A DNA stretch of 64,000 bases from Oopsacas minuta. Lineage: Eukaryota > Animalia > Porifera. The notes beneath the pieces were generated by a model. It worked only from the letters and a program-made list of their open reading frames with translations. It was not told the DNA's origin and ran no database searches. Shown here piece by piece: positions 43,858-64,000 of this stretch (its first letter is position 1; every line of letters starts with the position of its first letter). Position numbers and translations under genes: made by a program. The stretch lies in assembly GCA_024704765.1 (NCBI GenBank), contig JAKMXF010000354.1, positions 791,690 through 855,689 on the forward strand, read 5' to 3'.

Positions 43858-44821
43858 GAGATAGATAGCGGGAGAGATTACTACAAGTTAGCATATAATG
43901 CGAAAATATTGGGTCAATGGATGGAATTACGATAGCCAATATTGTTCACAAATATTCCTATAAATATAGTAGTAGAATTTTGTGCTAATTACAAAGAAAT
44001 GTACTGAAGAATCCTTATAAGAATTGCTATCGCCGGGAACAAATACCGTCAAAATCTCAAATGGTGTATGGACAATACAGAGCAAAACAAACATTTCCAA
44101 ATTGAATAGTAACTTATCTACTGAGCTGAACACAATGCAATCATTAGCAAAAATATATAATAATAAGCCATATGAAGTAATATACTTGTTTCCAATCCCC
44201 ACCCGCCCAAATTTTGTCCCCTGTCCGGAAGGATTGCATTTATATTTTTCCAAATTTATAGCTTATTCTTTGGTTAAAACATTATGCAATCCACATTTTA
44301 CTACTAGTATATTAAAAAATTCAATTATTTTATACCCAGAAAGAATGTGATGAGACAATTGAAGGGTCATCTTATTAACATATTAACTGGCGATAAAAAA
44401 TAAAAATAAAAAAAGTCCGCCGTCCCAGTTTCCGAAGAAATTCCGGATGAGAAACAAGTAAATTATCTCACATGGCCTAATCCTACTTTATATTTAGCTG
44501 GAGTATTTATAAATCAAGGAATGTCACTTCACAACATAACACGGGTGACGATATCCTTAGCTGAAATATGGGCAGTAAAGAAAAAGAACGATGCCATACT
44601 TCAAAGGGAAACATGTAAATTGAGTCTGTATAATGTAATAATATCTGTATTTAAATAATTAGATCACTCAAGGGTCACATCAAAGTTTAGTTTTGTACAG
44701 AAATAAATTATGAAAACAGTTAAAAGGTGTAAAGTCGTAGTTTACGGTAAAGTATATTACGCGACATATTCCATAAACTATAATAAATAACAATTTCCAA
44801 TCTCCAAATAATGCACAGTAA

Positions 44822-46162
44822 TTATCCAAAATATACAATTCCTGATGTAAAGTCTAACCAAGCACCAAGTGAATTGAAAATGTACAGATCTGCTAAAGTG
44901 AATGTGAGGTTAGTGAGAAGGATCAGGAAATAGTTTCCAGTGTTATGTTCACAAGGGATCGGACAGGGACGAGACTTCACGCAAATGCTAAGTGTATCAG
45001 CCAAGTAATTGCGAATCGTATTCTCACACATTGCTAATAGCAAGATTGTGAAGATGATAAAATATACAATTTTTAGTGATGCCATAAATTCTAACTCTAA
45101 ATTGTAGATGTAGAGAGAAGCCTTGAGCTCGGTAGTTACAATTATTCCAGCCAGAATGTAGGAAATTACAGCAGCAATTGGGCGGCCGAATATGTGAAAA
45201 GGAAAGTAGATATAGGTCCTGATAAAGTTTAGGCAGGGGATGTTCCAGTTGAATAGGATGTCTAGAAACGAGTGAGGTAGCTCTGTATGTATAGGTTTGG
45301 AAACAGAGAAGGATACTTTGTTTGGATTGAATAAAAGTAGTGTAGATATCTGCTGGGTCCCTGAAGATACAAGAGTCAGCTGTTGTAGCGAGTTTAGCGA
45401 ATATTTAAGGGAGCGGATTCCGAAGAAGACACAAAGAGTTGGAATTGGGAGAAGGTCACTTACTTTTACAAGAGCTATCCCTACAGCCATAAATAGCACT
45501 GATAATATGGCAGATGACGTCAACGTCAAGATACGCTTAGAGTTTGTATTCTTGAGTAAAGTGATCGTTTGATGTTCTTTGAGTGTGATGAATGGACCTA
45601 GGAGTATATTAGCAGGCGAAAAGAGATAGCCAAGATATTCAATAAATGTTGGTATAAGTTTGAAATCTACATCTGAAACCAAAATGGAGGATCGAGATCT
45701 CTTGGATAAAGAAATTTTTTGTTTTCGAATGTCCTGAGGTAAAGAATATATTTTCATGAATAACGTTAGGAATGTTATTTGAGATAAAAATGGCTGTGTA
45801 GATAAATATCCGATGAAAGGCCATGTTTCTACATGATATCCGGTAGAATGTAATGATACTAGGAAGTATGCAGTTACAGGTAAGAACAGGGAGAGTATGA
45901 TCCGTGCTCCTCTTAGAAACAGAATTAAGTAGGAAAGAGTTGCAATGAGGAGGTAGGAATAGATAATATGGTTCACAGCTCCGAATGCAAGAAACAGTGT
46001 AATTACACCGGATATAGTGAGTAGGATGTTACATTTATTGGGCGATATTTTGAGAATATTGATGATATGGAAAATACAGATTGGGATGATTATAAATGGT
46101 AGAAGAGTGGATAAATGTCCAATAATTCTAAGGAATGTCATTAATGTTAATTCTTTTAGCAT
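44822..46162 (-). CDS. PORCN: Porcupine-like MBOAT membrane protein, catalytic His absent (candidate pseudoenzyme)
   Basis: EYLGYLFSPANILLGPFI, VSKPIHTELPHSFLDILFNWNIP and LADTLSICVKSRPCPIPCEH align with PORCN ([43 protein letters not shown]). Hydrophobic, multi-pass. Confidence 0.75.
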   Translation of the reverse strand: MLKELTLMTFLRIIGHLSTLLPFIIIPICIFHIINILKISPNKCNILLTISGVITLFLAFGAVNHIIYSYLLIATLSYLILFLRGARIILSLFLPVTAYFLVSLHSTGYHVETWPFIGYLSTQPFLSQITFLTLFMKIYSLPQDIRKQKISLSKRSRSSILVSDVDFKLIPTFIEYLGYLFSPANILLGPFITLKEHQTITLLKNTNSKRILTLTSSAILSVLFMAVGIALVKVSDLLPIPTLCVFFGIRSLKYSLNSLQQLTLVSSGTQQISTLLLFNPNKVSFSVSKPIHTELPHSFLDILFNWNIPCLNFIRTYIYFPFHIFGRPIAAVISYILAGIIVTTELKASLYIYNLELEFMASLKIVYFIIFTILLLAMCENTIRNYLADTLSICVKSRPCPIPCEHNTGNYFLILLTNLTFTLADLYIFNSLGAWLDFTSGIVYFG

Positions 46163-47813
46163 TCTGACAGATGTATCTAGCTGAAATAATCAACATTGAA
46201 TTAGGTGTACAATTAACACAGAGCCTAGAAAAGATTGCCTTACCCACTCCAGTTCCTATAACCCTGCAATTACAATTATTGAGGGGGAGCTGGATAGGGT
46301 GTCTATATAAGGACACATGATTTTAAATTATATATCAAGTATATATAATCGGGATTCATTCTTTACAAATGCATTCAATTTAGACTGGACACTTCCATAT
46401 GGACGCAGATTGCCAAAGAATATCTAATTGCCTCCAAATAACGTCAACTGTCAAGTGAGTTATTAATATATTGGCTATATTTGTGGCGTTCCTTTCTATA
46501 CATAATCTAATAAAATCAAAACTGAATTGTGTTAGACATAATGTTAGTGGTTAACATTCGAGTACTATCTCTATCTAATCGTCTTCTTGTCGAATCGATT
46601 CACTTACTACAATATATGTCTCGTGTTTTGGAGATAGAGCAACAAATACTATAGGACTCTGTGATACCTTGTCAGTTAGTACTATTCGCTGTCTGAAAGT
46701 CCTATAACTCTGCATTCCATTCTTCCACTTATGTATTTCATCGTTCCGCCATATAATGTAATGGTTTCGCCATAGATTGTATAACAATACAAGAACTTTG
46801 TGTTTTAGAGTTTCTTATAACAATTCAGACCTTTGTGAATTTAATTAGTTTCTTGTGAAAATGACTGATCATCATTTCTTATTCTTTATACTTTCCCTCA
46901 CACAACTTACCAATAATCTCATTATTTTATCCTATTTTTGGAAGCATCATCATCTTCTTGTGATTGGTTATCATTCAGCAGACGAAATTGTATTACTATA
47001 TACTGTATAGACTGTCTATACTGAGTGACCCTTGTGTAGTTGACACATGAGCCATAAGATTGATCGAAACCTAACCAACGGGACCCTCTCCTACACCCAC
47101 GAAATGAAATGATGTTCATTTTATTTCTCTGATTTCTTTTCTAATTATGTGTAATTTTCCTTAATTACTTATAAAGATAGAGCAATATACACTCAGTCAC
47201 TTACTATAATAAGCTACATACAAACACGTTGTCTTGTCTTGTGTATGATTGCCCTCCAGACTAGATTGTAATCATTTTACAGTCTTATTTGTTAATCAAT
47301 ATCCTTAAAATCCACGAAGGGAATCTATAGTTTTTCAAACAAAACAGCTGTTAATATGACTATCTCATTAATTTATAGAAATCTTAGATATTAATTGGCG
47401 ATAATCGTTATTTTCATATCACGATGATAGACACTCGGTGAAATATTTCTTATATCAGGACAGAGTTCGATGGTAAAAGGTTTGTACTTATTTACATCGA
47501 CTTCCTTTTATATATTAACATGATCTGTATATTGTTAATATAAGAATTCAGTATACAAAATTTCGCGTGAAGTACCATGTTTCTACACTTTCAAACTGAG
47601 TCCCTTTCTTTTGTTATTATGAATACTTTCAGCATCACACTATGAAGAGCAAGCCGTATAACATGGGAATCCGGTTCTTCACTTTGCGATTAACTATTCT
47701 ATTATTAATCAAATGAACTCTTCTATGTTCAATAGGTAATACTTGTCAATATAAATATCTGCTAACTGCGGACTAAATAATGGTTGGATATTTGGCTTTA
47801 AGTAAACTACAAG

Positions 47814-49214
47814 ATGTATCTGTTGACGTACTACCTTCTTCTCCTATCTCTCTTTCTTGCTGGAGTTTCATGTGGGGATCTTCAATCTGAAGATGAGACT
47901 GACTCTATTTGCAATGGAGATTTTGACTTTTATTTCTTACTCGATAAGTCGGGTAGTATAGGAGATGATTTTCCAGTTTATATCGTACCGTTTGTGGAGA
48001 AAGTAGTGGATAGTCTGATTAGCGATAAGATTCGTATCTCTTATATAGTCTATTCGTATGATGCTGTGGTAATCCTAGAAATTACAAATGATGAAGAGAA
48101 GATACTCAATGGATTGGAAGATCTCAGGAATGTGTATGCTGATGGAGGTACGGTTATCAGTACTGGGCTAGATGAGATTAGATATGCTATGAAGTATAAT
48201 GGAACAAATCGTGCGGCTGTAATTCTCGCGGTTACTGACGGTCAAGATAACGATATGACATCTGCGTTAAAAGCAGCCAATTTGGTGAGAAGTTTAGGAG
48301 CTAGTATTTTCGCGATTGGAGTTGGACAGGAAGTATCTTATGAGCAGCTAACCTACATTGCTGATAGTCCCTCTTCTACACATGTAATCATGATAGATGA
48401 CTTTGGAGGATTAGATGACATCATAAATACAGTAGTCAATAGAACTTGTATAGAGATTATAAGTGCTGATCCTCTGGAGGAGTGTGTCATGGCTGAAGGG
48501 AATATAACATTAATTGGTCGGGGGTTTCAGAACGGAGATAACGCATCTAACATATTCTGTATCTATCATGTTAACACTACATTTCATTATTACACTAATG
48601 CATTTCCTGGATCAACTAATCAAGTTATCAAATGTCCTCTCCCTTATGTAGAGGAACCCTCCCAGGTCTTAATACAGGTATCTCTCAATGGACTATCCTA
48701 TGTATCCAGTAATGTTACACTTACGTTTCGATACTGTGTGCCTATTGACTGGACTCTAATCTTTTCCATCCTCGGCTCTCTGCTTTTGTTTCTACTAGCG
48801 CTCTTACTTTGTTTCCTCTGGTTCTTATGGCCTGTTATAACTGGCGTGACGTATAAAATGCCTGCTAAGTATGTGGACCCTGCGCCCCTTCCCCCGCCCC
48901 CCGAGCCTAGAAAGTGGCCTGTGGTTAACGCCTCACTCTACGGGAGACCAGGTGCTGGGGGTATGATGCCTACACGAGTGGGGTGGGGCAATACAGGAGC
49001 CACAGAGATGGGGGCTAAACTGATGAAAGCTAAAGATGGAGTTATTTTGAGAGAGGAATCTTCCCCACTCGTAGAATTGGATCAACCTGAAATCGAGAAG
49101 AGATCCTTTTGTAATAAATGTTGTGAGCCTTTTTCCAGATGCTATCATTGTATCCAGTCTGTTAGACCGATCCGTGGTGATGATGGGAAATGGTTCTCAT
49201 GGAAAAAACTTTAG
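47814..49214 (+). CDS. ANTXR1: Anthrax toxin receptor-like type I membrane protein (signal peptide, vWA, Ig-like, TM, cytoplasmic)
   Basis: CNGDFDFYFLLDKSGSI (MIDAS DxSxS), VTDG, TM, then PPPPEPRKWPVVNASLYG...RVGWGNTGATEMGAKLMKAK matching the ANTXR cytoplasmic motif. ANTXR1 versus ANTXR2 cannot be resolved. Confidence 0.88.
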   Translation: MYLLTYYLLLLSLFLAGVSCGDLQSEDETDSICNGDFDFYFLLDKSGSIGDDFPVYIVPFVEKVVDSLISDKIRISYIVYSYDAVVILEITNDEEKILNGLEDLRNVYADGGTVISTGLDEIRYAMKYNGTNRAAVILAVTDGQDNDMTSALKAANLVRSLGASIFAIGVGQEVSYEQLTYIADSPSSTHVIMIDDFGGLDDIINTVVNRTCIEIISADPLEECVMAEGNITLIGRGFQNGDNASNIFCIYHVNTTFHYYTNAFPGSTNQVIKCPLPYVEEPSQVLIQVSLNGLSYVSSNVTLTFRYCVPIDWTLIFSILGSLLLFLLALLLCFLWFLWPVITGVTYKMPAKYVDPAPLPPPPEPRKWPVVNASLYGRPGAGGMMPTRVGWGNTGATEMGAKLMKAKDGVILREESSPLVELDQPEIEKRSFCNKCCEPFSRCYHCIQSVRPIRGDDGKWFSWKKL

Positions 49215-49662
49215 CGAAACTCTACCTAGTTAACATTGTTAGCATTTGTACTATTTTCATGGATGTGTACTTTAGTATACTTTTATTGCTCTGTATTTCT
49301 ACAAAAAAACTGAAGGTCACTTCCCCTTTCTGTATATTTGTGTTATCATTGCATTCTATTTAAGAAGTGTGCTAACTATACTTGTACAAGTATTTCTTTG
49401 ATAACTTCATAATTTGAAGTTAGGATTCGATATCTAAATTCTACTCAGAATTCTATTATTCTTTATCTTCCTAGATCTTATTTTGTTAGTTTCACAATTA
49501 TCTTTTCATGAATTCTCAAGTTAGCTCGATATTCTCCACTCAACACAACTGGACATTTCTTATCTGAAGCTTTTCAATTAAATTACTTTACTGAGTCTTC
49601 CCATATGCTAGTTCTCTGTTACACAAGTTCAATCAGTTAGAATTACAAAATACTATCATGTA

Positions 49663-49686
49663 TCTCTCTCTCTCTCTCTCTCTCTC
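49663..49686. repeat. (TC)12 microsatellite
   Basis: Read directly from the sequence. Confidence 0.95.
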
Positions 49687-50233
49687 TTCTCGAAGCAACT
49701 ATAGCATAATCCTGATTTATTTATTTATTTAAATTTGACATGTACAGAGACATCTAGCAGTCATCTCAGGTATTCATTAAATAATTATTTAAGTACTATA
49801 TTATACTTTACAAACTATGCATTATACAAGAGACTTATCGTCTAATACATAACGGTACACTGATCCATCTGTTTATTGCTAACAATACTGATTTAGTGTA
49901 TTTTAACTGATCATAATACTTGTGTGTGAGAAGCCCGGGAACCCTTGGGATGACATTCTTTTGCACTTTTTTATTTAATATATATGTTTATTGCGTTAGC
50001 TAATTGATTTCAGAATTGTGTTTACGGAAAATTCCTCTTAATTTGCATTGAAATAGCGAGACATCATACAAAGTATTGTCAGCTGGCTTACAAGATATTA
50101 TATTATAATAAATTCGACAGCCAAACTAGAAATATTGAAGTTGTATGAATTTTTATTTACTGATTCTAGCTCTAGTTAACAAGCAATTGATAGTTTTTGC
50201 GATAACAATTTTCGCAATATTTCTATACAATGA

Positions 50234-50332
50234 TATTGGAATCTCGTTAATACGAACACAGTAACACATACCTCAAGATGTGGACTAGAAATTTCGACCG
50301 GCCCAATCTGTATTTACTAACGAGGCCTACTG
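50234..50332. mobile_element. Degenerate MITE, family B
   Basis: TCTCGTTAATACGAACAC (50242-50259) is identical to 51774-51791. The right end TACTAACGAGGCCTACTG resembles the family-B TIR. Confidence 0.55.
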
Positions 50333-50744
50333 GATTAATCATTGTTGTATTAATGAGAATTTCTGAGCTGTAGGAAGAGTTGTGCTAAATCAGTGTTTCT
50401 ACATGTAAATATTACTTTAACTTTTGTTTACGCATATATTGAATTCTTCATAGTCTAGCTTCTACTATACAATAACCTACTTTTGAGTATCGTCATAAAC
50501 TTGTGTGTATTAATATGAATATACCGTGTGTTATATTTATATTATTAGTGTTTGTGCTTACGTTACTCACAATGTGAGTATACATTCTTAAACTTTATGC
50601 TACAACAGGATACTATACTTATATGGTAATATGTATCATATTCATTCAGTTGGAAGAAATACTCAATCATAGTCTCATTAGCAAAATCCATAGTTTACAA
50701 ACTTTAAAGACTATGAAACATGACACGCACACACTCAATATATA

Positions 50745-51569
50745 TCAAAACAGATTAAACTCAATACGTTGTTCTCCTTCAAATAACTTCCCCTCTTTCT
50801 CTTCAAACTCACCAACATCCATTGTACAATCGTTTGGAGAGTCACGAGACCTCAAATCATCTATCCCACAATTTATTCCGAACTTGAACCATTCATCCTT
50901 GAGCACTTCAATAAAGCTCCAATCCATTTTAATATAACGTCTGGCCAATTCCCTCCTCCCTATTTTAACTAGGATGATATAATTTCTCTCCTTCCTCCAC
51001 GAGATTTTTTGCTCTGAAACAAGAGATTCTATCACGCTTACAAAGTCTAAACTTTTTTTCGGTTTGGTGTCTAGGTAAACAGATAATTTGCAGACATCCG
51101 CCATGGTAAGCTCTTGCTTGAGAAAGAACAATAGTTTTGTTGCTGCAGCTTTAGCGTATTGACTTTTCCGCGCAATATCTTCTCGGTTTTTGTACTCATC
51201 CAAAATGTCTAAGTAGTATCCCGCAACTTTATTCCCTGCGTACGCTAATGCTTGTCGAAATCGATCAATTCTCAGCAAACGGTGTCGTGTGAGGTAGATT
51301 AAGAGATGGATAGAACTCTCCATATCTTTATAATCTTCTTCCTTGATGCTATACCAATGAATCATTTTCTCAGTTTCTTCCCAGCTAATTCTTTGTGCTA
51401 ATGGCAGCAGACAGTCTCTTTCCATCGATGAAGGTGGTGTTGCTTGAGGTCTTCTTTGCCCAACCTCTTTGACCTTAGTTTCCCCCTCACCGGTAACATC
51501 ACCGGAATCTTCTGTCGGTTTTTGTTTCACTTCCTCCTTTTGTATTATAACAGGCTCATTCGTTGCCAT
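50745..51569 (-). CDS. Tandem death-effector-domain-like protein (FLIP-short-like), no caspase domain
   Basis: First ATG at 51569 (the ORF track uses an upstream GTG). Two death-fold-like segments: CLLPLAQRISWEETEKM...SSIHLLIYLTRHRLL and LLFFLKQELTMADVCKLSVYL...SLDFVSVIESLVSEQKIS...LVKIGRRELARRY (RxDL-like). Confidence 0.55.
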   Translation of the reverse strand: MATNEPVIIQKEEVKQKPTEDSGDVTGEGETKVKEVGQRRPQATPPSSMERDCLLPLAQRISWEETEKMIHWYSIKEEDYKDMESSIHLLIYLTRHRLLRIDRFRQALAYAGNKVAGYYLDILDEYKNREDIARKSQYAKAAATKLLFFLKQELTMADVCKLSVYLDTKPKKSLDFVSVIESLVSEQKISWRKERNYIILVKIGRRELARRYIKMDWSFIEVLKDEWFKFGINCGIDDLRSRDSPNDCTMDVGEFEEKEGKLFEGEQRIEFNLF

Positions 51570-51765
51570 TTTTTCGCTCACAAATGTATATATATACTCT
51601 CCAAATATTAACGTGTATATCTATATATCGAACATTCCAGTACACACAGTTTTATAGTGCTATTCTCTTGGGGTATCATGTTCATTATTAGTAATTATCA
51701 CTGAGCAATAATTACTTTAAATATTACTTTTTTTGAAAGTTATGATCAACATTTTATTTGTACTA

Positions 51766-51949
51766 CAGTAGAGTCTCGTTAATACGAACACGGTTAAGAA
51801 GTAACTCCGTATGAGGAGTACAAATTTGTCCACTTTATCAGTCCCCTTCGATACCTTTTCAATGTAAATTAGTTCGGACAATACGTACTCCGGATTTGAA
51901 GTACGAATTTTGGCAGTCCCCTAGTGTACCTATTAACGAGAGTATACTG
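51766..51949. mobile_element. MITE, pogo/Tigger-like, family B, 184 bp
   Basis: TA at 51764-51765 and 51950-51951. TACAGTAGAGTCTCGTTAATA versus reverse-complemented right end TACAGTATACTCTCGTTAATA: 19/21 identical. Confidence 0.85.
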
Positions 51950-52065
51950 TATTTCTATACACTCAGCCATGAAGCCCATGATTCATTACATTACAAATTA
52001 AATGAGATACGGAGAGACCATTATATCCAACGATCATCAGTGGATATTTTTATCGCTTAAAAGAA

Positions 52066-52190
52066 CAGTGGAACACCCTTGTGAGTAACAAAATATGTTC
52101 TTATAACCGGGATAAATTATACAATATTATATGAGAACAGAGGATGATTCTTATATCCGATGTTCATATAAGGTATTTATATAACCACTG
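52066..52190. mobile_element. Degenerate MITE related to family A
   Basis: CAGTGG...CCACTG-TA ends. Internal GTTCTTATAACCGG (52097-52110) is the exact reverse complement of 62068-62081, with degenerate subterminal copies nearby. Confidence 0.5.
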
Positions 52191-52593
52191 TACTATATCT
52201 CATGATACTCATCTAGATTCTACCTATCATCAGATTCTATGAGATTCACGAGAATCACATCACCTCCTATATCTCATCCATAGACGAATCTATTATCTGA
52301 AATTCTGAATACGTGTATCGTTATTTATTGAACTTGACTATATTATCCCAGCTGTTAGGTAAGAGAAATTCTTAACACTAATTATTGTTACATTTAATAA
52401 TCTACTACCAACCAATTGTAGCCAATTGTTTAACCCAAAAGTTATATCATTTAACTGGAACTAAAAATATTACGAATCCTTGGTAGACGTGGTTCAGTTT
52501 CCCAAATACAGATTTGATAAGTTTAACTTTACTTTATTGTGTATGGAATATTGTACTGTTCCACTTTACTCGTGATGTAACTGATAGGCTAAG

Positions 52594-55500
52594 CTATACC
52601 ATTGTTTCTGTATTGCCTGTGACCTTGTTGATATTTGTAATGGGAACTGCCCTGACCTTTGAGTTAGGAGGGGTCTTGGGAGGAGCTGGTGCGGGTCTTG
52701 AAGGTTTATAAGGTTTTGTTTTCAAAGAATGTGACTGATAATATTCCCCTGAATAAGCAGAATATGCTCTACTCCTTAACTCGTTGATATTAGGGTCAGT
52801 AGAATAGCTGGTGAAGGGAGGTGGAGATGTGTAGTAAGGGATCGCGCTGTTGTACCCAACAAATGGAGCATTATACTGTTCAGGATATTCATAACTCGGA
52901 GTATGGCTATGATTGTACTCTGCTATTTCTCTTGGTAAAGATTCGTTCATTAGATTATCAAATGAAGTTGGCATCATTGACATTGATGGGATATGAACTG
53001 AGCTAGGGTAGTAAAATGGGGCTGGTACCATTACCTGTCTGAAGTGAGGATCAGAGGGGAAATGGCCATGTTGAGGTAAGCTCCCATAAGGCACTGAGAA
53101 CTCTACATAACTGTTAAAACCTTGATAGCTTGCGTTATTGCTATTAGGATACCCGTATGTGTAATTATTGGAGTCTGGTCGCTTCTTAGCGTTTGTATTT
53201 GGAGTAATTGGTATTTCTGTTGTACCACCGAAATTCACCTTCAGGCCTCGAGGCCGGCTCGAACAGTTAGAATCTAAATCTTGTGAATCCTTGCTTGTAC
53301 TGAGACCATTACTACTAGCTGTTGAGGATATTGAATTGTAGAACTGAGGCTGTTTCAAGTTACTTTTGAGTGTACTCTTATTGGGTGATTTTGGTGGGAG
53401 AGTAGGTGGCTTGGCTGGTCTAGGAGGCAGCTGTTTGTCTGTTTGTTTCAGATTTATGTTAATCTTAACACTTTGCGGACTATCGGTGTGTGAAGATATT
53501 TCTGGTGGATTTACTTGCGTATTATCTGAACTAACACTCTCAGTAGCTTCTCTGAATTTAGTTCTTCCTCCGTTAGGTAGTACTTCACTAGTTCTCACAA
53601 GTTGTGGGAGATTAACGTATGGTTGTTTTGACTTATTTACTCCTGATACCTTCTTTGTTACTACTTTAGGTAATGCTTGTGGATATGGTGGGACAGGTGG
53701 TGGTTTCTTCTGCTCTGATTGTTTGATAGGTAGACTAGTTGTTAGTGTGTCTTTATCTGAGAATAGGAATGAGGTTTCTAAGTCTCTAGCAGAAGAGGGA
53801 GGTGAGCTAACACTGAGGCGTTTTTTTGGATGTACCAAGGTGACATCATCTCTGGTAGGAGGAGATGTCATTTCATCTGTCTCAGACCCAGAGCTGCTAT
53901 TTGTTTTCAGCTTTATTGTAGTTATTTCGTGCTCAGGCAGTAGAATGCTGTTATCAATTGACGTTTGAAACTCAAACTGTGGATTATTGACAATGCTCGG
54001 AGACTGTTTAGTGAATGTATTGCGAGGTTTAACCTTTGGAGAGGTTAGAGTAAGGTGCATTGGAGACGCTTTTATTCTAGGACTCATTTCACTAAGGTCA
54101 GATGGAGAGCGAGAGGGAGGAGGAGGGAAGAGGAATACAGGGTGAGGACCTGTGAGTTCTGTAGGAGTGGTAATACTGAGCTTTTTTGGAATTTGTGGAA
54201 CAGGTTTGCTTTCATCTTCTGATGAGGACTCGTCTGGTTGGCTCCTCCTTCCTGAACCTCTTTCTGACCTAGTTTTCAGTCGCTTCGTTTTCCCTCTCAA
54301 TGCAATTCCTCCATCCACACTATTGAAGTGATATGTTGGATCTGAATGACACATATAAGGTTTAACTTCAAACCGATTTTCAGGATCAGGCGAATCTATT
54401 CTCATCTCGAATTGAAGGGATTTTCTTAGTTTAGTTTTCCTATTAATTTTGCTATACAACTCCTCAAGATTTGGTGGGCTCGGATTTCGTAATTCTGTAT
54501 CAGAACATGCTTTCTCTTCACCTTTGCCTTTGTCTTTTTTGTTGTTCTTTTTGTATTTGAAAATACTTTTGAATTTGTCTGCAGCATTTGACGACTTTCT
54601 TCTAGCCTTCAAATGTTTGGGGGAGTTGGAGGTAGGCGTTGAGTTCTTAGATTCTTCTCCGTTAAAGAGAGTGAAATCTGGATTTATTTCAATATCATTT
54701 ATACTACAGTATTGAGTCTGATGGGGGATATTATAATTGCTAGGTCGGATGTTGGCGTGAATAGCTGTAATCCACTCATGAAGTGATCCTCTATAGGAAA
54801 TAGAATAGTACACATAAACACTTACAAAGAGTTAATATTACGACACGATTACAGCATGATTGTTCAATAAATTAGAGTAATTAATAACATAATTATGCTA
54901 TATTTAGTATTATATTCCTATTTTAGAATATTTACAATATTTGCTTACCCATCCTCTGTAGCCAGGGTATAAGTAATACCCTCAGTCTTAATCTGGAAAG
55001 AGTTTGCTTGATTTTTGTAGTTACCCATCACTTGTATTGCTTTGTAAGTGCAAGACTTAAATGAGATAAATAAAATTCTGTTTATTGGGTTTATTGTGTC
55101 GCTTTGAGTGGGGTATATCTCCAGTGAGCTTACCATCAGTATTTCTGCCAGCTGCACCCAATACTGGTACCATTTCTAGACAATAAACACATTATCAAAT
55201 CTACTAATTACATTTAACTGTATCAATTACATGAATTAACTTGTGTCCTATCCCAGTAGCATAGTACGTAATTAATAGCTATTCTAATATGTTGATAAGT
55301 AGTTAGATAGGATGCAGGGCACCTTGTACGCTGCTAGAGACGACGTAAGAACTTTCAAAGTTCAGATAGCTGCTAACTATTCTGGAAAGGCTATCACAGT
55401 TCTTTCAGACCCTCCTCAGTTTATTCTGGGAGAGACTAACGTGGGTGTAGAGTTTCTATCCAAGTTTCCACTCGGGAAAGTGCCTGCCTTCGAGACAACC

Positions 55501-58500
55501 AACGGTGATACTCTGGTACACTCTGATGCAATCGCTAGCTACCTTTCCAATGCTGAATTACGAGGTGCTACAGAATTCGATCAAGCAAAGGTACAACAAT
55601 TCGTTAGTATTGCAGAGTCAGAGGTCATGCCTGCTTGCTGTAACTGGGTATATCCCACACTGGGGATAATCCAGCCTAACAAATTGAATGTGGATAAGGC
55701 AAAACAAACAATCACAGATGTTCTATGCTTTTTAAATCAGCATCTATCTACACGAACCTTCTTAGTAGGAGAGAGAGTCTCTCTGGCAGATATCAGTATG
55801 ACTTGCTCATTTCTACTGCTATACAAACAAGTATTGGAGCCATCTCTTAGGGATTCTTTTGAGAACACAAATCGCTGGTTTATCACTTGTATTAACCAGC
55901 CTCACTTCAAAGCTGTTATAGGAGAAGTAGCTCTATGCGAGAAGATGGCTCAGTTCGATTCTAAGCGGTACAACGAGCTGAACAAGAAAGAGGGAGGAGG
56001 CAAGAAAGCTAAAGTGCCAGCTGCTACTAAAGCAGAGTCTAAGAAAGAGGCTCCGGCCAAGGAAGCCAAGGAGGAGATTCCAGCACTAGATGACGATGAA
56101 GATGACGATATCTTAATTCGCAGAGCTGAGCCTAAATCAGTTGACCCCTACAAGGACCTACCACCTGCATCTCTGAATATGGACGAGTTCAAAGGCGTAT
56201 ACTCTAACAAAGATATTGAAACTGTAGCTCTACCGTTTTTCTTTGAAAATATTAAGTTGGAGGAGCACAGCATTTGGCACTGTGTGTATGAATATGTTGA
56301 TGAACTTAATCAACCATTCATGGCATGTAATTTAGTTTCTGGGTTTTACCAACGTATCGATAAGCTGAGAAAAACCGCATTTGGTGTCATGGCTGTATTC
56401 ACACAGGGTGTAAAGGCAATTGGGATTGAGGGAATATGGGTTTTCAGAGGTCAGGAGAAAGCTTTCGATCTCTGTGAAGATTGGAATATTGACGCTCCTT
56501 CTTATACATTCAGGAAGCTCAATCTAGAACAGCAGGATGACAAACAAAAAGTATGTGACTTCTTCCTTAGGAAAGACAACATTGGTGGGGTTGTAGTTCA
56601 CGATGCTAAAGTTTTCAAGTAACTCTCCTCTCTCATTGACATTAGGTTAGTAATGGTATAGTAAAAATATATTAGGAGTATTAGTTTCTGAACAAGAGTG
56701 TAGAGAAATTTTCAACTAGTTTATATGTTGTTTCTTTGAATTCCTATTCATTAAACAAATCTTATCTATCCCTAGCTAAAATCTGTCCAACATTGGACGT
56801 ATGTTATCTGTACTGTTTGATATACAGTAGATATATGTGTAAATTGTAATCAGTAGTTTGAATGAGCTTGGTTAATGTTATCTAATTAGTAAGATAACTC
56901 GTGGTGTAGATTAGACTTAACTATTACAGTATTATATTCATTAAGTAGACATTAATGTTGCCTCAATGTCTCAAAGTCTAGAGATATAATACTAACATAA
57001 TATTTCTATGATGAAAGCACGTATCAATATCCAAGTTAATTTGCCTTAGTATCAAACACAATCACCAATAGCTAAACATGGTTTCATTTCATTAAGTTGG
57101 AAGTAATAGTATTTACCAAATTATATATTAATTTTCTTCTATATTCAATGGTCTATGGGTCATATTAGCATTTAGAACTCATTCTATTAGAAAAGTATTG
57201 AATTTAGCCAAGTTGTGAGATGGAAGAGAATACAGGAAATGTTCCTACATTTGACGCGTGTTGGAAAGGAGAGTATGAACAGAACATGTTTATTGAGACA
57301 GACCTCAGGGCAGACGAAAGCTTAGGAGATCCAATCCATATATCAGGCAGAGCCCCAGAAGAGGGATGCTTACCGAAATGGGCGCGTAAAAACAGGATGC
57401 GGTATCTACAGAACGCGGGAGCCTGGCAGGAACAAGAACTTCTCGAGATCTATCGTGAGGGACTCCTCCGTCTGAAGGAGCTATATAAAGCACAGAGAAG
57501 ACACTTATGGTTAGAAATGAAAGAGAAACGAAGAAAATATTTATTCCAAGTTCTAGAAGCTTCCAATCAGAAGACCCTCACTCCCAGCTTAATGGAGAGT
57601 CTCAGTGCTCCTTCGACACAGCAGGAATCTGTAATAGAAAAATATAGTACATTCCATGGGGAAGAGGGTTTGGTTGCTAGGAAGAGTTTCATTACAATGG
57701 CAGAGTTATCAATCGAGAAACTGAGTGAAGAGAAACAATCTCGTCTGGTTATTGGTAAGCCTAAACCAGCTCCAGGCGCTAATCTAGACTATCAAGAGTA
57801 CAGCAAATTTCTAGGTCGTATACAGAGTGCACTAGCTTCTCAGCCTTCTAATGCTGATCGTTGCAGAGTTAAGAATTGTATTAGACAACATCTACCTCGT
57901 AGCAACTACTGTATATCTCATATCATGAGAGACACAGAGCAGTGTTTGTTTGTTAAGTGCTCACATGAAGGAGCTGAGTCTTGTGAGAATATTGTTAGCA
58001 GAACTGAGGCTCAGACTCTCTGTATTCTCCATAGAACAATTCCTGAGTGCAACAACTCACCACCAATTCAATAAATACAAAAATTGTTCCGTCATTATTA
58101 GTTATTTTGTTAAGAGACTTATGAGTGGAAAATGATTGAATATTTAAACGATTTTTAAGTAATATAGCAATTATCTGTGTAAGTAAATGTTAATAATTAT
58201 TACATAAGGTGTAGTTGTTAGTATTTTATGCAGAGTAACAGTCAAGAGCGATTGGAATCTTACAAAAACGGAGGTAAGCATTATGATTGGAAATGTAAGT
58301 ATCGTCAGAAGTGCTTAGACAGACTTAAGACAGGCCGGAGGAAAGTACAAGATCAATTCAGACATCTGTCAGTTACATCCACGAGTGAAGCTTATGTGCT
58401 AGCTAAGGAGATAAGTTCTAATCTAGTGGAAGAAGTGCTGACAGATACAAATACTTATATAGAAACAGATAAACACGAATCGTTGGTGGATGAATTATCA

Positions 58501-58975
58501 GAAGAATTAAAAGAGATTGTAATAGAGTGGGCACTCTCACAGGAAATGTGGGAGACAGCCATGGAACAGCTGGAGAATAAGAACCTTATTTGTCCTATTT
58601 GCAGACAGAATTATCTTTATGAAGGGGGGACTATGATAACATGTAGTTGTGGACTACAGCTAGACAACGAAGTCTTAAATTTGAAGCAATTAGAGAAGAA
58701 ATTAGAAGAGGCAACCAGTAGACACTGTAATAGTATTTGTGAAGGGAAACTAGAATTTAGAGTGGTAGAAATGGAAGATATCAGTCTGTCTGTACTTAAC
58801 ATGCAATGCAATCTCTGTGGAGTAAACGAACTTATTGTGTAATTTTATCACTTATTTTGAACTTAATCACTTATATTTTGCGAATTATGTGAGTAGAACG
58901 ATGATTAAAGTAAGTTCTTACCTTTTTCTGAGTATTGTAAAAGTGGAGTTGACCTTCCTTAATGATCTTGTTCAT
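52594..58975 (-). CDS. N-terminal PH-domain adaptor with a long Pro/Ser-rich, Tyr-motif tail (DOK/GAB-like); 3 exons
   Basis: E1 58975-58922 (MNKIIKEGQLHFYNTQKK), intron 58921-55176 (GTAAGA...TCTAG, phase 0). E2 55175-54949 (KWYQYWVQL...FQIKTEGITYTLATEDG), intron 54948-54791 (phase 2). E3 54790-52594 (GSLHEWITAIHANI...). The joined exons give a complete PH domain. Confidence 0.8.
55312..56622 (+). CDS. EEF1G: Elongation factor 1-gamma (nested in intron 1 of the PH adaptor)
   Basis: GST-like N-terminus (FLSKFPLGKVPAFE, RTFLVGERVSLADI, NTNRWFITCINQPHF) and C-terminal EF1G domain (MDEFKGVYSN, FMACNLVSGFYQRIDKLRK). Confidence 0.97.
   Translation: MQGTLYAARDDVRTFKVQIAANYSGKAITVLSDPPQFILGETNVGVEFLSKFPLGKVPAFETTNGDTLVHSDAIASYLSNAELRGATEFDQAKVQQFVSIAESEVMPACCNWVYPTLGIIQPNKLNVDKAKQTITDVLCFLNQHLSTRTFLVGERVSLADISMTCSFLLLYKQVLEPSLRDSFENTNRWFITCINQPHFKAVIGEVALCEKMAQFDSKRYNELNKKEGGGKKAKVPAATKAESKKEAPAKEAKEEIPALDDDEDDDILIRRAEPKSVDPYKDLPPASLNMDEFKGVYSNKDIETVALPFFFENIKLEEHSIWHCVYEYVDELNQPFMACNLVSGFYQRIDKLRKTAFGVMAVFTQGVKAIGIEGIWVFRGQEKAFDLCEDWNIDAPSYTFRKLNLEQQDDKQKVCDFFLRKDNIGGVVVHDAKVFK
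57220..58074 (+). CDS. KANSL2: KAT8 regulatory NSL complex subunit 2-like (nested)
   Basis: YLQNAGAWQEQELLEIYREGLLRLKELYKAQRRHLWLEMKEKRRKYL matches KANSL2 (LKHAGVYTAEEV...EKLIRLQSLY...LKEKKRRYL). C-terminal Cys/His finger pair C..C...LPRSNYCISHI...LFVKC...C...LCILH. Confidence 0.8.
   Translation: MEENTGNVPTFDACWKGEYEQNMFIETDLRADESLGDPIHISGRAPEEGCLPKWARKNRMRYLQNAGAWQEQELLEIYREGLLRLKELYKAQRRHLWLEMKEKRRKYLFQVLEASNQKTLTPSLMESLSAPSTQQESVIEKYSTFHGEEGLVARKSFITMAELSIEKLSEEKQSRLVIGKPKPAPGANLDYQEYSKFLGRIQSALASQPSNADRCRVKNCIRQHLPRSNYCISHIMRDTEQCLFVKCSHEGAESCENIVSRTEAQTLCILHRTIPECNNSPPIQ
58228..58842 (+). CDS. RPAIN: RPA-interacting protein (nested)
   Basis: WKCKYRQKCLDRLKTGRRKVQDQFR N-terminal motif, acidic middle, C-terminal LICPICRQNYL...CSCGL...HC...C...C..C zinc region. 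Confidence 0.85.
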   Translation: MQSNSQERLESYKNGGKHYDWKCKYRQKCLDRLKTGRRKVQDQFRHLSVTSTSEAYVLAKEISSNLVEEVLTDTNTYIETDKHESLVDELSEELKEIVIEWALSQEMWETAMEQLENKNLICPICRQNYLYEGGTMITCSCGLQLDNEVLNLKQLEKKLEEATSRHCNSICEGKLEFRVVEMEDISLSVLNMQCNLCGVNELIV

Positions 58976-59329
58976 CTTGAAAGAGGTTTCAATTTCTTAA
59001 TATATTATCTGCTTTGTAGAGAACTGACGAATCACGATTGCAATACTGCTAGCTAGAAATTATATGAGAAACACTATAAATGAAATGATACTAGTCAGTA
59101 TTTTCTTAAGTATATCAGTTTAGCTGACCATTGACTCAACCCTGCTCCTATTTGCTGACTTATGTTGGAGCTACCTACTATCTCCACTTTACCAAGGATC
59201 AAATTCAAAGATAATTGTTGCTGTTTCTATTCATAATATAATTTACATTATTTATACAAAGCATTGCACGCATGGTGTTTAAGCCAAACTTTCCATATGG
59301 AGATACGTTTGGCCTAATTAGCTGGGATT

Positions 59330-59830
59330 AAGTTTCATTTAATTATCCTCGGTAAGGACAGATGCAGAGATATAACCAAGGAAAATATTTCTAACAAACC
59401 GGCAGCTGAAATATGTACCATTATTTTGACTCTTACTCCAGATGGACAGCTGCAAATATTTAATGTATTTCTTGGATAAGTAATTCACATATGAACTCTA
59501 TACTCGATTACTAAAACATAATGACCAAGGCTAGCTTCCCCATGGCTTGTCATAAGACTAGAGAGAGTATTTTGTCTGCGACAATTTAGTTGTCTTTGGT
59601 AGGAGTCCACAACAGATTCATGGCTGAATTAATTGTTTATAAGAGTTGGGCACGATTCACACAAGTCTCTGTACTTACTTGCTTTAGCTGTTTGGATTTC
59701 CTTAGAACTGAAATATATGGAGGTAGAATTGTTCGATTGTTTTACTTTGTCATCTATCTTCCCTGTCTCATTTTATAGAAGAATAAGTCCTATATTGTGT
59801 CCATGGAATATGAAAACCAATTCTTAATTA
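59330..59830 (+). mobile_element. Possible highly decayed pogo-type DDE transposase fragment
   Basis: Interrupted frames give QTGS / EICTIILTLTPDGQLQIFNVFLG*, loosely resembling the pogo DDE_1 segment (TG.EK.R.TV.L...A.G.KL....IFKG), and later LLALAVWIS...IFP. Multiple stops and frameshifts. Confidence 0.25.
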
Positions 59831-60546
59831 TCTTCTTCCTAATTAATTATTGGCTATATTGATACACCGCTACTTTATTCCTAACAATAATTACAGGGAA
59901 ACTAACCCATTCTCAATTAATTTTCATTTGATTGAAATTGCTTTTCCAATCCAAATTTTTCAAATTTGATTACATTATCAAAGTTGTCGCGTTGGATGGT
60001 TTACTCATCATTCTATATTTTTTCATTCTGCGGTTATTCAATCTGCTACACTACTTAATTAACCCAATCATAGCATCTGTGACCGAGAGATACGCCTGTG
60101 GTTAATTATTTTCTAGAATATTAATCAGTTACTATCTTATTTATTTTAATTTTCTATAGAAAATGGTTGCAATTGTGTTGTGACGAAGATTCATTGCTAA
60201 TTTATCAACATTTTATTATCTAAGTTAGTGGCCAAATATATTTCCTGTATCTCGTAAGTCATAACGTTGTTGTGTGTAATATTTACAAAGCAGTTTACTT
60301 TACCTTTCTTGATAGGCAATCAAATACATTTCTTGACTACAACTTTCGTAATATGACGTCCTTAATTTCATAATTATATTTCTATGTGAGCTAATGTCTA
60401 CCTATATGATTACTTCACATGTTTATTGGACTATATCCCCTGTTAGAAACCGCTGTATAGATTGATATAAAAGTGAATTCCTAAGTCTCTCTCTACGATC
60501 TAAATATTTATTTTTTCAGTTATTTTAACCAAACTAGTCTGTACTA

Positions 60547-63500
60547 ATGTCAGCTACACACAGTCCAATCATACCAAACAACCGAAATTCTCCGCCATTA
60601 CCCTACCCCCCTAAAACAAATGGATCTTGTTCCTCTCCACTTCTACCCACTCACTTGAATACCAACAAGAAGACACCCCCTATTCCCACCAAACCCAAGC
60701 CCCCTCTCTCCCTGAGACGATCTCACGTCAGCCAACGTTTGTCAGGAGAGAAACGATTCCCCGCCACAGATTCTAGTCCCGAAAGCTCCCCTCAACCTGT
60801 CCTTAAGCCTATCCCCATAACAAAGAAATACTCCCTCGATTCAATCACTATTCCAAAAACAGATCTCCCTTCTATGATGCACACCCCTCTCTCCCCCACT
60901 CGTTCAGCATACAATCTGAATACAGCCCCGAATACTACAGTCTTACCGCCAGCTCTCAAGCCTAAGCCTACTTCACTAACTCCTAGCTCTTCTCCTATTT
61001 CTTTCAGGAAAATCAATTCAGAAGCTGCTCTGGCGACTCATAAGGCTAGACTAGACTCTCCTGTAATAGCTCCCAAACCTCTATTCCCTAACTCACACAA
61101 ATACTCTACAAGCAACTCACCGGGACCTTATACCACATCAAATGACACTAATTCAGAAGATTCTGGAATATTCATCAGTCCTGACAAGACACTGCCGGAA
61201 CTCCCACCAAAGCTTCCTGTCAGGCCAATCAAGAATACTATACAAAAGCCTACACCAGGTTGGTGATCAATTTATCCTTTATTATTAATATTATTTATTT
61301 ATTTATTGTATTTTAGTGACTAGCATTATTTTGGTACCAAAAATTGAGAGGAGGGAACAACGCTGGACTACCAACACCTCAGATATCCCCATGCCTCCTC
61401 CTCTCCCAGATAAACACACCCCTGTAGAGGATAAAACCAGGAGTTCTTCAGAAGCAGACACGCTAGACACCGAGAGAACTAAATTATTCAGAACTATGCC
61501 TTCTCGTGGAACTAAAAAGAAGCGACCTAATCTCAAGCACCACACAGATGTGTACACTAAGGTTTGTATTTGTTTATTAAATGACAATATTTCTAAATAA
61601 TATATGGAATATGTTAGCGCATTGTGTTTGAGATAGTACTCTATCCCATCCTGTCGGTCTTCTAATAGATAATACATGCATGAACTGTGTGGTGAATTAA
61701 TTATATTTCGTGAATAGAGAGTAACTAATCGCTAGAATTATGTTGAATTGTATTCGGTCGAATTATTCCCAGGAATCTTATTAATCCTGGTTTATATAAA
61801 CTTGTGTCATTCTCGAAAAGAAGTCTTACACTTCATATCGTACTTCTAATTAAATTGACAGATAATACATACAACTGTCACTCGTGTGTAACCCAATCAG
61901 AGCTTGTAGGAAAGAATCGTTATTCTATAAATGGAGATACAATACTTATCCCGTGTTTCACTCATTAATTATATTAATGTTGATGTGCTAATACAGTAAT
62001 TTTATAGGATTTCTATTACTGGGATAGCAATTGTGAATTACAATTTGTTAACGATAATACAGTGTATGCCGGTTATAAGAACCCTTTTTTGGGAGTAGCA
62101 ATACAGTCCGGATTACTTGCATAAATATGCAGGAATTTATGAGAACCGTCTTACAATCTTTTAGCCAGGGACACCTCCTCCAGTAAGTAAATCTACAGAT
62201 GAGAGCCTGCATTGCAATCAATTACAAATACATCCTCGTGCTGATTTGAACCTCTCTCATAGCTTTGACTCTCTGGATAGTGAAGAGCATCATTCTGTAG
62301 ACACACTTGGCCGCAAATCTGATTCTACCAGTAATATCCCTAAGAAAATATCTAGTGGCTCTAATGAGTGAGTTCATTTATTTCAGTCATTACACCATCG
62401 CATTCTTATTTCTTAGTTCATATATTGTCGGTGGAATATATTTCTGTGTAGAGGTATTTGGGTGTAACGACCTATTGAATTCTAACCAATAATTACTGAC
62501 TAATTTCCTAAATATGATTATCTCATAAATAACCTCGGTGTACGTGGTGGTGACGGGTTATCCCTCCAAAAGTACTGAGAAATTTTGCTGTTTAATACTT
62601 ATGCTAAAACAAGGCACATAAAGCTTAAGGATGCGTCCGCCCGTTGCGCAGTGACCTAGCAAGAAGCGCGCTAGTACTAAATATATCTGAATAACTGTAG
62701 TATAATTGGAAATGGAAAAATTGATCTCTTAATTGTAAGCTGATTTTATTATTAATTCTGTTTGAATTCTTTAATATTCAAACAGTTTAATAATTCCCCC
62801 TCATTCACTCAAACATCATAATCCTTTGTATGGCAGTGATATGCATTGGAGTCATGAATCTGCTTAACTCATAGAGTACAGATAATACCCCCAACTTATT
62901 GACAATAGTTATGCAATTAAGTTATAGAATGAGGTAATTGTTGATCAGTTGAAGGACTTTTTCCTGCTTGAAAATGCTATTTTCATAATGATCTTTATGT
63001 TATGCAAACATCATGCTGTTTATCACCTTTTATGACTCTTCAATGGGAAATCTTATAAATAGTACACAGACTTGAATAAATATTTAATATTTTTTATCGT
63101 CACTAATCTTATATACAATGTTATCATGTGTTTCATTCAGAATGTCCAGGAGGAGGTAACAATACATTCAAATTTATTCTATAATTATTTTATTTTTACT
63201 TAACCTTTTTACTTAACCTTTTTCCAAAGGGTGAAGTCAGGAAAAATGAAAAGAGCCTTGCTCAAAGCCTTGGGGGTTGGGAAGAAAGAGAGAAATTCAG
63301 AATTAGACATATCCACTAGTCTTTCAAGCAGTATCAGCAGTCCAGCTTTATCAAATGAGATTCCTAATCTTAGCTCAACACAGTCTGTACCAGCTAGAGT
63401 ATCCCGCGCTCTTAACATGAAAAGCTCAGTGGATGATTCGTGTGTATTTGAGAATGTTAGCGACACAGAGGCTGATCCGGACCCAGGATTGCTTCCTAAG

Positions 63501-64000
63501 AGCAGCTATGATCCCTCTCTTCAGGTCTCCACTGAGCTCACATCTTCTCCTGTCAGACATAGGTCTCCCAAATCTCCGAAAAAGAGATCCTTCAACAGCA
63601 ATTTCCCCGTTCCACCCCATTTCCAAAACACAGACTTTCAGTATGTATTTGAGAATGAAGATTCAGACACAGACTCTCTCTCTGACGTAGAAGCTTTCGA
63701 TGATTTTGATGAAATCTTAAACGATTCTGATAACGAAATGACAGAGGAGGATGTGGATAAGGCAAAGATGCGGACAATAGCCCGAGCAGCCTCTGGGATA
63801 ACATACAGTAAGTGCTATTACGTTGCTAAGGAGATCCTCTCCACTGAGGAGACTTATGTCAGGAAGCTAAGGTTGTTGCATATCGATTTCTCTGAGGCTC
63901 TTGAAGAGGCCAGCAAGAGAAATGGGAAGGTAAGTCATATCCCATTAATAGAATGACATAGCTTATACACACTGCATCATCTCTCTATATTATTCTAGCC
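60547..64000 (+). CDS. FGD6: FGD5/FGD6-like RhoGEF (long Pro-rich N-terminus, start of DH domain); 3' part outside the window
   Basis: In-phase exons 60547-61258, 61317-61561, 62165-62367 and 63230-63929. The last encodes SKCYYVAKEILSTEETYVRKLRLLHIDFSEALEEASKRNGK, matching the FGD6 DH start (SKVHHIAKEIMSSEKVFVDVLKLLHIDF). Confidence 0.8.
62060..62152. mobile_element. Truncated MITE, family A, in FGD intron 2
   Basis: TA-CAGTGTATGCCGGTTATAAGAACCC..TTGGGAGTAGCAATACA..CAGGAATTTATGAGAACCGT aligns with 12811-12903; the right TIR is missing. Confidence 0.65.
62630..62675 (+). mobile_element. Possible Helitron 3' terminus relic
   Basis: A GC/CpG-rich patch in AT-rich intron ending GAAGCGCG-CTAG-T (CTAG at 62671-62674). 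The hairpin is imperfect. Confidence 0.2.

Follow-up and report, generated by a model that had tools for sequence, protein, structure and literature searches.

Nested genes, which lie within the introns of other genes, make up ∼10% of Drosophila genes and ∼1% of human genes, the guests being mostly on the opposite strand to their host and functionally unrelated to it (PMC4394429). In human NF1, one intron contains three antisense coding genes, OMG, EVI2A and EVI2B (PMC4394429). Glass-sponge genomes have been called rich in nested genes, many of them conserved, and 2432 were counted in Aphrocallistes vastus, 12.4% of its genes (PMC10282587). For the glass sponge Oopsacas minuta, whose genome has been published (PMC10280926), the annotation holds only 83, such low counts being attributed to the annotation method (PMC10282587). 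The subject here is a 64,000-nucleotide (nt) stretch of the O. minuta genome, positions 791,690 to 855,689 of contig JAKMXF010000354.1 (the window, in whose numbering all coordinates are given). It very probably contains a four-exon minus-strand gene, the host, which encodes an N-terminal PH domain with a long disordered tail and carries three single-exon antisense genes inside a single 3746-nt intron. The guests are EF1-gamma (EEF1G, here EF1G), a KANSL2-like gene and RPAIN; the host corresponds to the public gene model LOD99_12799.

The locus resembles the nests of A. vastus in its single-exon intronic guests, in a layout common to glass sponges and in being under-called by annotation. In the part of the A. 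vastus paper available, neither the O. minuta locus nor LOD99_12799 is discussed; the particulars here are three guests in one intron, which appears to cut a PH domain after its first strand. NF1 shares with the locus the three protein-coding guests, all antisense and all in a single intron. However, the NF1 intron is tens of kilobases long and its guests are tissue-restricted, whereas in O. minuta the intron is 3.7 kb, the spacers span 79–600 nt and the guests include a translation factor with very high expression. Set against nested genes in Drosophila and human, the O. minuta nest is not different in kind (PMC4394429). The initial annotation had held that nests are usually single and that this one was therefore unusual. 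This was not borne out, given the 12.4% of genes that are nested in a glass sponge (PMC10282587) and the multi-gene antisense nest of NF1 (PMC4394429). The O. minuta nest is one more case of the nested architecture typical of glass-sponge genomes.

Sequence inspection of the minus strand showed an ATG at 58975 and, eight codons ahead of it in the same frame, a TAA. The ATG opens a coding segment of 18 codons (54 nt, 58975–58922, phase 0), encoding MNKIIKEGQLHFYNTQKK, which is followed by GTAAGA from 58921. Exon 2 opens with AAA TGG at 55175, straight after ...TGTCTAG, and the TAG preceding it is acceptor and in-frame stop at once. No in-frame ATG leading into exon 2 is present in 55176–55311. 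A local start for exon 2 was considered and rejected, the upstream ATGs of that interval being out of frame or running into stops. All of the sequence statements from which the intron had been proposed (the ATG and its upstream TAA, the GTAAGA, and the AAA TGG after TCTAG) were borne out, and both distances given with them, 136 nt from the EF1G ATG to the acceptor and 79 nt from the RPAIN stop to the donor, are correct.

The host exons, all on the minus strand, are laid out as follows. A non-coding leader exon, or transcribed DNA contiguous with the host, occupies 59129–59900 and is separated by a 76-nt intron in the 5′ untranslated region (UTR), 59053–59128, from the start exon at 58922–59052. 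The start exon comprises 5′ UTR (59052–58976) and the 18 codons described above. The first intron of the coding sequence (CDS), phase 0, extends over 55176–58921 and holds the three antisense genes. Exon 2 (54949–55175; 227 nt, 75 codons plus 2 nt) is assigned PH strands 2 to 7 from its sequence and the cross-assembly alignment. Intron 2, of 158 nt and in phase 2 (54791–54948), is followed by the last coding exon, 52594–54790, which encodes the PH C-terminal helix (SLHEWITAIH) and a disordered, Pro/Ser-rich tail of ∼715 residues ending in ETMV. This last exon is 100% identical to LOD99_12799, listed as a 'hypothetical protein' of O. minuta.

Four sequencing runs of one sample hold the locus and none is recorded as RNA. 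Runs X1 (one 13-kb piece) and X2 (Nextera adapter ends) show flat depth and are therefore DNA. In run X4 the adapter ends are TruSeq, and word depth sums to ∼1e5 over EF1G, by far the largest in the stretch, thousands over the other genes, ∼85 in the EF1G–KANSL2 spacer (56758–57151) and nil at 58859. X4 behaves as RNA sequencing (RNA-seq) and fits the RNA-seq library described in the O. minuta genome paper. The X4 data are contigs, not reads, and contigs give neither strand, nor ends, nor level. Three joints were found in them, 54790/54949 (30 letters on the side), 55175/58922 and 59052/59129 (131 letters on the side), all reading CT..AC on the plus strand, that is, GT..AG on the minus strand. 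A single contig of 1573 nt, record 16, joins the leader exon to 59052 and carries both 59129|59052 and 58922|55175 at exactly the predicted bases. The 58922/55175 junction, which had been predicted from the sequence, was thus recovered when the RNA was examined, with GT..AG ends. The 5′ end of the intron is missing from the RNA, the X4 contigs having no coverage of 58859. Record 16 continues upstream past 59900 by ∼643 nt, to ∼60543 by extrapolation.

The extrapolated end of record 16 lies a few bases before ATG 60547 of a plus-strand proline-rich open reading frame (ORF), which in related loci belongs to a RhoGEF-containing gene. Either the host leader is very long, filling 59129 to ∼60543, or record 16 merges two divergent transcripts over that stretch.

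Relatives of the host were found by a word search with the large exon in seven ENA assemblies, at 45–68% identity of the host protein, and the surrounding DNA was compared. In six of the seven, RPAIN, the KANSL2-like gene and EF1G stand in the same order, antisense, upstream of the large host exon; the contig of the seventh ends 150 nt upstream of exon 2. A pattern scan found the start exon as M-N-T-(K/R/T)-I-I-K-E-G-(Q/H)-L-Q-F-Y-…-K in all six nest-bearing assemblies, 82–260 nt past the RPAIN stop and with the donor GTAAG (GTAAC in one). Exon 2 opens straight after an in-frame TAG with a pyrimidine run in all seven. The orthologous host introns measure 3773–4737 nt in the six assemblies, and the distance from the EF1G ATG to the host acceptor is 123–217 nt in all species. 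When the DNA was aligned, the start exon with its CAAGATG context and donor formed an island of 81–85% identity between flanks of 35–44%. Differences among the seven start exons number 21, 44 and 138 at codon positions 1, 2 and 3, which is the pattern of translated sequence. Over eight species the mean column identity of exon 2 is 86%, a figure that covers the 13 codons ahead of the GenBank start. To judge from the alignment, the acceptor of the leader intron, ∼77 nt before the ATG, seems also to be kept. The conservation check therefore found the arrangement, donor and acceptor included, in six other glass-sponge assemblies. Given that the junction is present in an RNA-like run and that the start exon is kept in six assemblies, the nest is more than a chance arrangement.

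Residues 1–100 of LOD99_12799 match the PH profile PF00169 at 26.2 bits (cut-off 25.1) with an expectation value (E) of 1.2e-05, over profile positions 48–105 of 105 only; the whole protein scores 22.9 bits, below the cut-off. The match depended on combining the exon-2 part with the exon-3 helix. The proposal that the host encodes a PH domain is thus upheld by a score above the cut-off, but in the truncated model and over positions 48–105 only. Such a restriction would be expected of a domain deprived of its first strands. Against 47 profile positions left unmatched, 23 + 13 + 18 residues lie upstream once the start exon is counted, and the IIKEGxL pattern of the start exon is invariant among the assemblies. 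These features fit a PH domain interrupted by the intron behind its first strand, which the start exon would supply.

For the Atlas model of residues 1–95, ten PH-bearing clusters were found at template modelling (TM) scores of 0.65–0.69, and UniRef labels the host protein as PH domain-containing. AlphaFold2 models were too poor for use, with a predicted local distance difference test (pLDDT) of 38.9 for LOD99_12799 residues 1–100 and 52.6 for the exon-2 alignment. The large exon alone had no Pfam match. Sequence searches of the PDB with residues 1–100 and with the exon-2 profile returned chance matches only (E > 0.2). When exon 2 was used for a word search, the matches were two genomic exon-2 ORFs, and none was a transcript-derived protein with the joined N-terminus. 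The exon-2 profile searched against the large protein library returned one exon-2 ORF, already known from the word search, and three repeat proteins (FG-GAP, immunoglobulin and unnamed), and the latter three were set aside as spurious multi-stretch matches.

The public model begins MVSSLEIYP, at an internal Met of exon 2, and is without the start exon and 13 further codons, 31 N-terminal residues altogether. The 13 skipped codons are conserved, with K-W-x-x-Y-W-V-Q-L invariant, and two assemblies (L002 and L006) have Leu where GenBank places the start Met. Since the Met is replaced in these two assemblies while the preceding 13 codons are kept, translation cannot generally start there. The suspicion that annotation had missed the start exon was therefore well founded.

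On the preferred reading, host coding would start in the 18-codon exon at 58975–58922, which would give the first PH strand. A full-length protein would then need the polymerase to cross all three guests against their direction, after which the spliceosome would remove the guests along with the intron. The spliced form is presumably the main protein-coding form. Head-on polymerase traffic is predicted from the geometry alone, and host and guests may interfere with each other.

Several points weigh against this reading. The junction is carried by one Logan contig, whose exon-2 side amounts to 27 letters plus 2 ambiguous ones and falls below the 31 letters set as the rule for a bridging record. 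A contig that breaks off where two sequence paths of the assembly graph part would probably stop at about that place. X4 comes from the same study as the genome, and contig depths cannot rank the spliced form against a form that crosses the acceptor. Record 16 may merge the transcript of the plus-strand neighbour with the host leader. Another X4 contig, record 12 (55149–55326), crosses the acceptor unspliced and reaches 14 nt into the EF1G CDS. Three sources are conceivable for it: retained intron, a host transcript initiated within the intron, or EF1G RNA begun further upstream, so that it overlaps host exon 2. EF1G may accordingly not lie strictly inside the intron at the transcript level. 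Finally, exon 2 alone gave no PH match in Pfam, the PDB or the 1.8-billion-protein HMMER library, and the PH call for the N-terminal half would be one by pattern only.

One way of accounting for the short junction is that the contig is an assembly chimera, that the distal ATG exon is foreign to the host and that its resemblance to a PH strand is due to chance. A single contig with 27 letters on its short side, taken from contigs instead of raw reads, would allow this. However, the joint falls at the exact bases predicted from the sequence alone and has GT..AG ends, the same contig holds a second clean GT..AG intron, and the exon, its donor and its position are kept in six assemblies with a coding pattern of substitution. 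A chimera is therefore scarcely credible. Record 12 raises a different explanation, in which most host mRNA starts inside the intron near a bidirectional EF1G promoter (55176–55311) and encodes an N-truncated protein, the distal exon being minor or regulatory. The unspliced crossing of the acceptor favours this, as does the start of the GenBank model at the exon-2 Met; since no RNA covers 58859, retention of the whole intron is a poor explanation of the contig. Nevertheless, two assemblies have Leu in place of the Met in question, all assemblies keep the 18-codon start exon and the 13 codons ahead of that Met as coding sequence, and in each of eight species the acceptor is precisely where the exon-2 frame begins. 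Without its first two strands a PH domain would not be expected to fold, and the strandless record 12 could equally be a minor upstream start of EF1G. Internal initiation as the main source of host mRNA is thus unlikely.

Another proposal is that EF1G is not strictly nested, its transcription unit beginning within or beyond host exon 2 so that the two genes form an exon-overlapping antisense pair. Record 12 does run from host exon 2 into the EF1G CDS, and in every species the host acceptor lies a mere 123–217 nt from the EF1G ATG. Against this, the mean word depth of record 12 is 465 compared with ∼1e5 for the EF1G body, indicating a very minor start at most, and the contig break at 55326 puts the bulk of EF1G 5′ ends at or after ∼55297. 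An overlapping pair is plausible but on balance not to be expected. The nest might also be a conserved regulatory device, in which very strong antisense transcription of EF1G over the 3′ end of the host intron limits the number of polymerases from the distal promoter that reach exon 2. Cells would thereby alternate between the full-length PH adaptor and a form initiated close to the EF1G promoter, truncated at its N-terminus and membrane-blind. A device of this kind would account for the lasting conservation of the layout as well as for the contig that crosses the acceptor unspliced, but it must be considered very unlikely. The preferred reading therefore remains that of a spliced host mRNA whose coding sequence starts in the distal exon.

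The three guest CDSs all lie inside 55176–58921 on the plus strand. EF1G (55312–56622, 436 residues) has GST_N, GST_C and the EF1G C-terminal domain, all present and in canonical order, with Pfam E values of 1.9e-09, 2.7e-14 and 1e-35, respectively. The KANSL2-like protein (57220–58074, 284 residues) has a single zf-C3Hc3H domain (PF13891, 1.5e-10) at residues 215–271; human KANSL2 carries two. The ESM Atlas clusters closest to it bear the name KAT8 regulatory NSL complex subunit 2 (0.92, 209 shared features). RPAIN, the RPA-interacting protein (58228–58842, 204 residues), matches RPA_interact_N at 29.1 bits (cut-off 28.8; 7.6e-07) and RPA_interact_C at 57.8 bits (cut-off 25; 1.6e-15). No splice joint was found within any of the three in the RNA-like X4 contigs that cover each of them, EF1G over its entire CDS. 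Full Pfam architectures, RNA-like contig coverage and intact orthologues in six assemblies show the guests to be independent, intact and expressed. The three had been put forward as complete intronless plus-strand genes, and the Pfam identities together with the lack of splice joints agree with this. In O. minuta 9872 of 16340 transcripts are single-exon (PMC10282587), so intronless guests are unremarkable here. Retroposition as their origin was rejected as uninformative on the same count.

Two observations concern the ends of the guest transcripts. X4 coverage is absent at 58859, within the interval 58843–58921, although RPAIN, with its stop at 58842, is well covered; the RPAIN 3′ UTR seems to be under ∼17 nt, or its end has been lost from the contigs. 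In the interval 55285–55330, a run of TAG/AG motifs leads directly up to the EF1G ATG (…AAGTAGTTAGATAGG ATG), and similar TAGnTAGnTAG runs precede EF1G in five of the six other assemblies, the sixth (L002) having been left out of the alignment. Since the low-depth X4 contig breaks off at 55326, a further sequence path joins close to 55297. The run could be a spliced-leader acceptor, spliced leaders having been reported for A. vastus (PMC10282587), or the path could be noise at very high depth.

The surroundings of the nest are also shared. A gene order extending over more than 20 kb (∼44000–64000 of the window) is common to all assemblies and consists of the RhoGEF gene, the nest, the host, a VWA/Anth_Ig gene, a cyclin, a Porcupine-like MBOAT gene and an LCM-Kelch gene. 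In one assembly a Tc1/mariner-type DDE_3 transposase gene adjoins the conserved block (L005:12643-12752). Run X5, a 2024 run under another organism label, matches the locus at ∼93–97% identity over 54098–59832, including exon 2, EF1G to KANSL2, and the end of RPAIN to the start exon, with a 155-letter replacement at 59618–59653. X5 stems from either a divergent population or a very close relative, and the layout there is the same.

The host tail is disordered and its alignment contains the invariant islands QPYVN(L/V)PQL, PPRPxKPP, SRPAPAPP and HPKKRLSV and the C-terminus ET(M/S)V. The first three islands and the C-terminus resemble, in that order, a Grb2-SH2 site (YVN), an SH3 ligand of the RxxK type, a ligand of the PxxP type and a PDZ ligand (ET[MS]V). 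The best guess is that the host may act as a membrane-recruited docking scaffold of the GAB/DOS kind. GAB/DOS docking proteins, like the host, have an N-terminal PH domain and a long disordered tail, a resemblance of motifs only; the host tail differs from theirs in ending in the PDZ-ligand-like ET[MS]V. Word and profile searches returned no relatives of the host outside the glass-sponge assemblies.

With its three guests, the nest is a well-supported and conserved addition to the evidence for under-calling of nested genes in the O. minuta annotation. It is also a compact, 3.7-kb example of a host transcribed head-on through one of the most active genes of the cell, and could serve as a test bed for transcriptional interference, a use which opens no new question. 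The main gain from its discovery is a corrected public gene model, in which the host would regain 31 N-terminal residues, the presumed first two strands of its PH domain.

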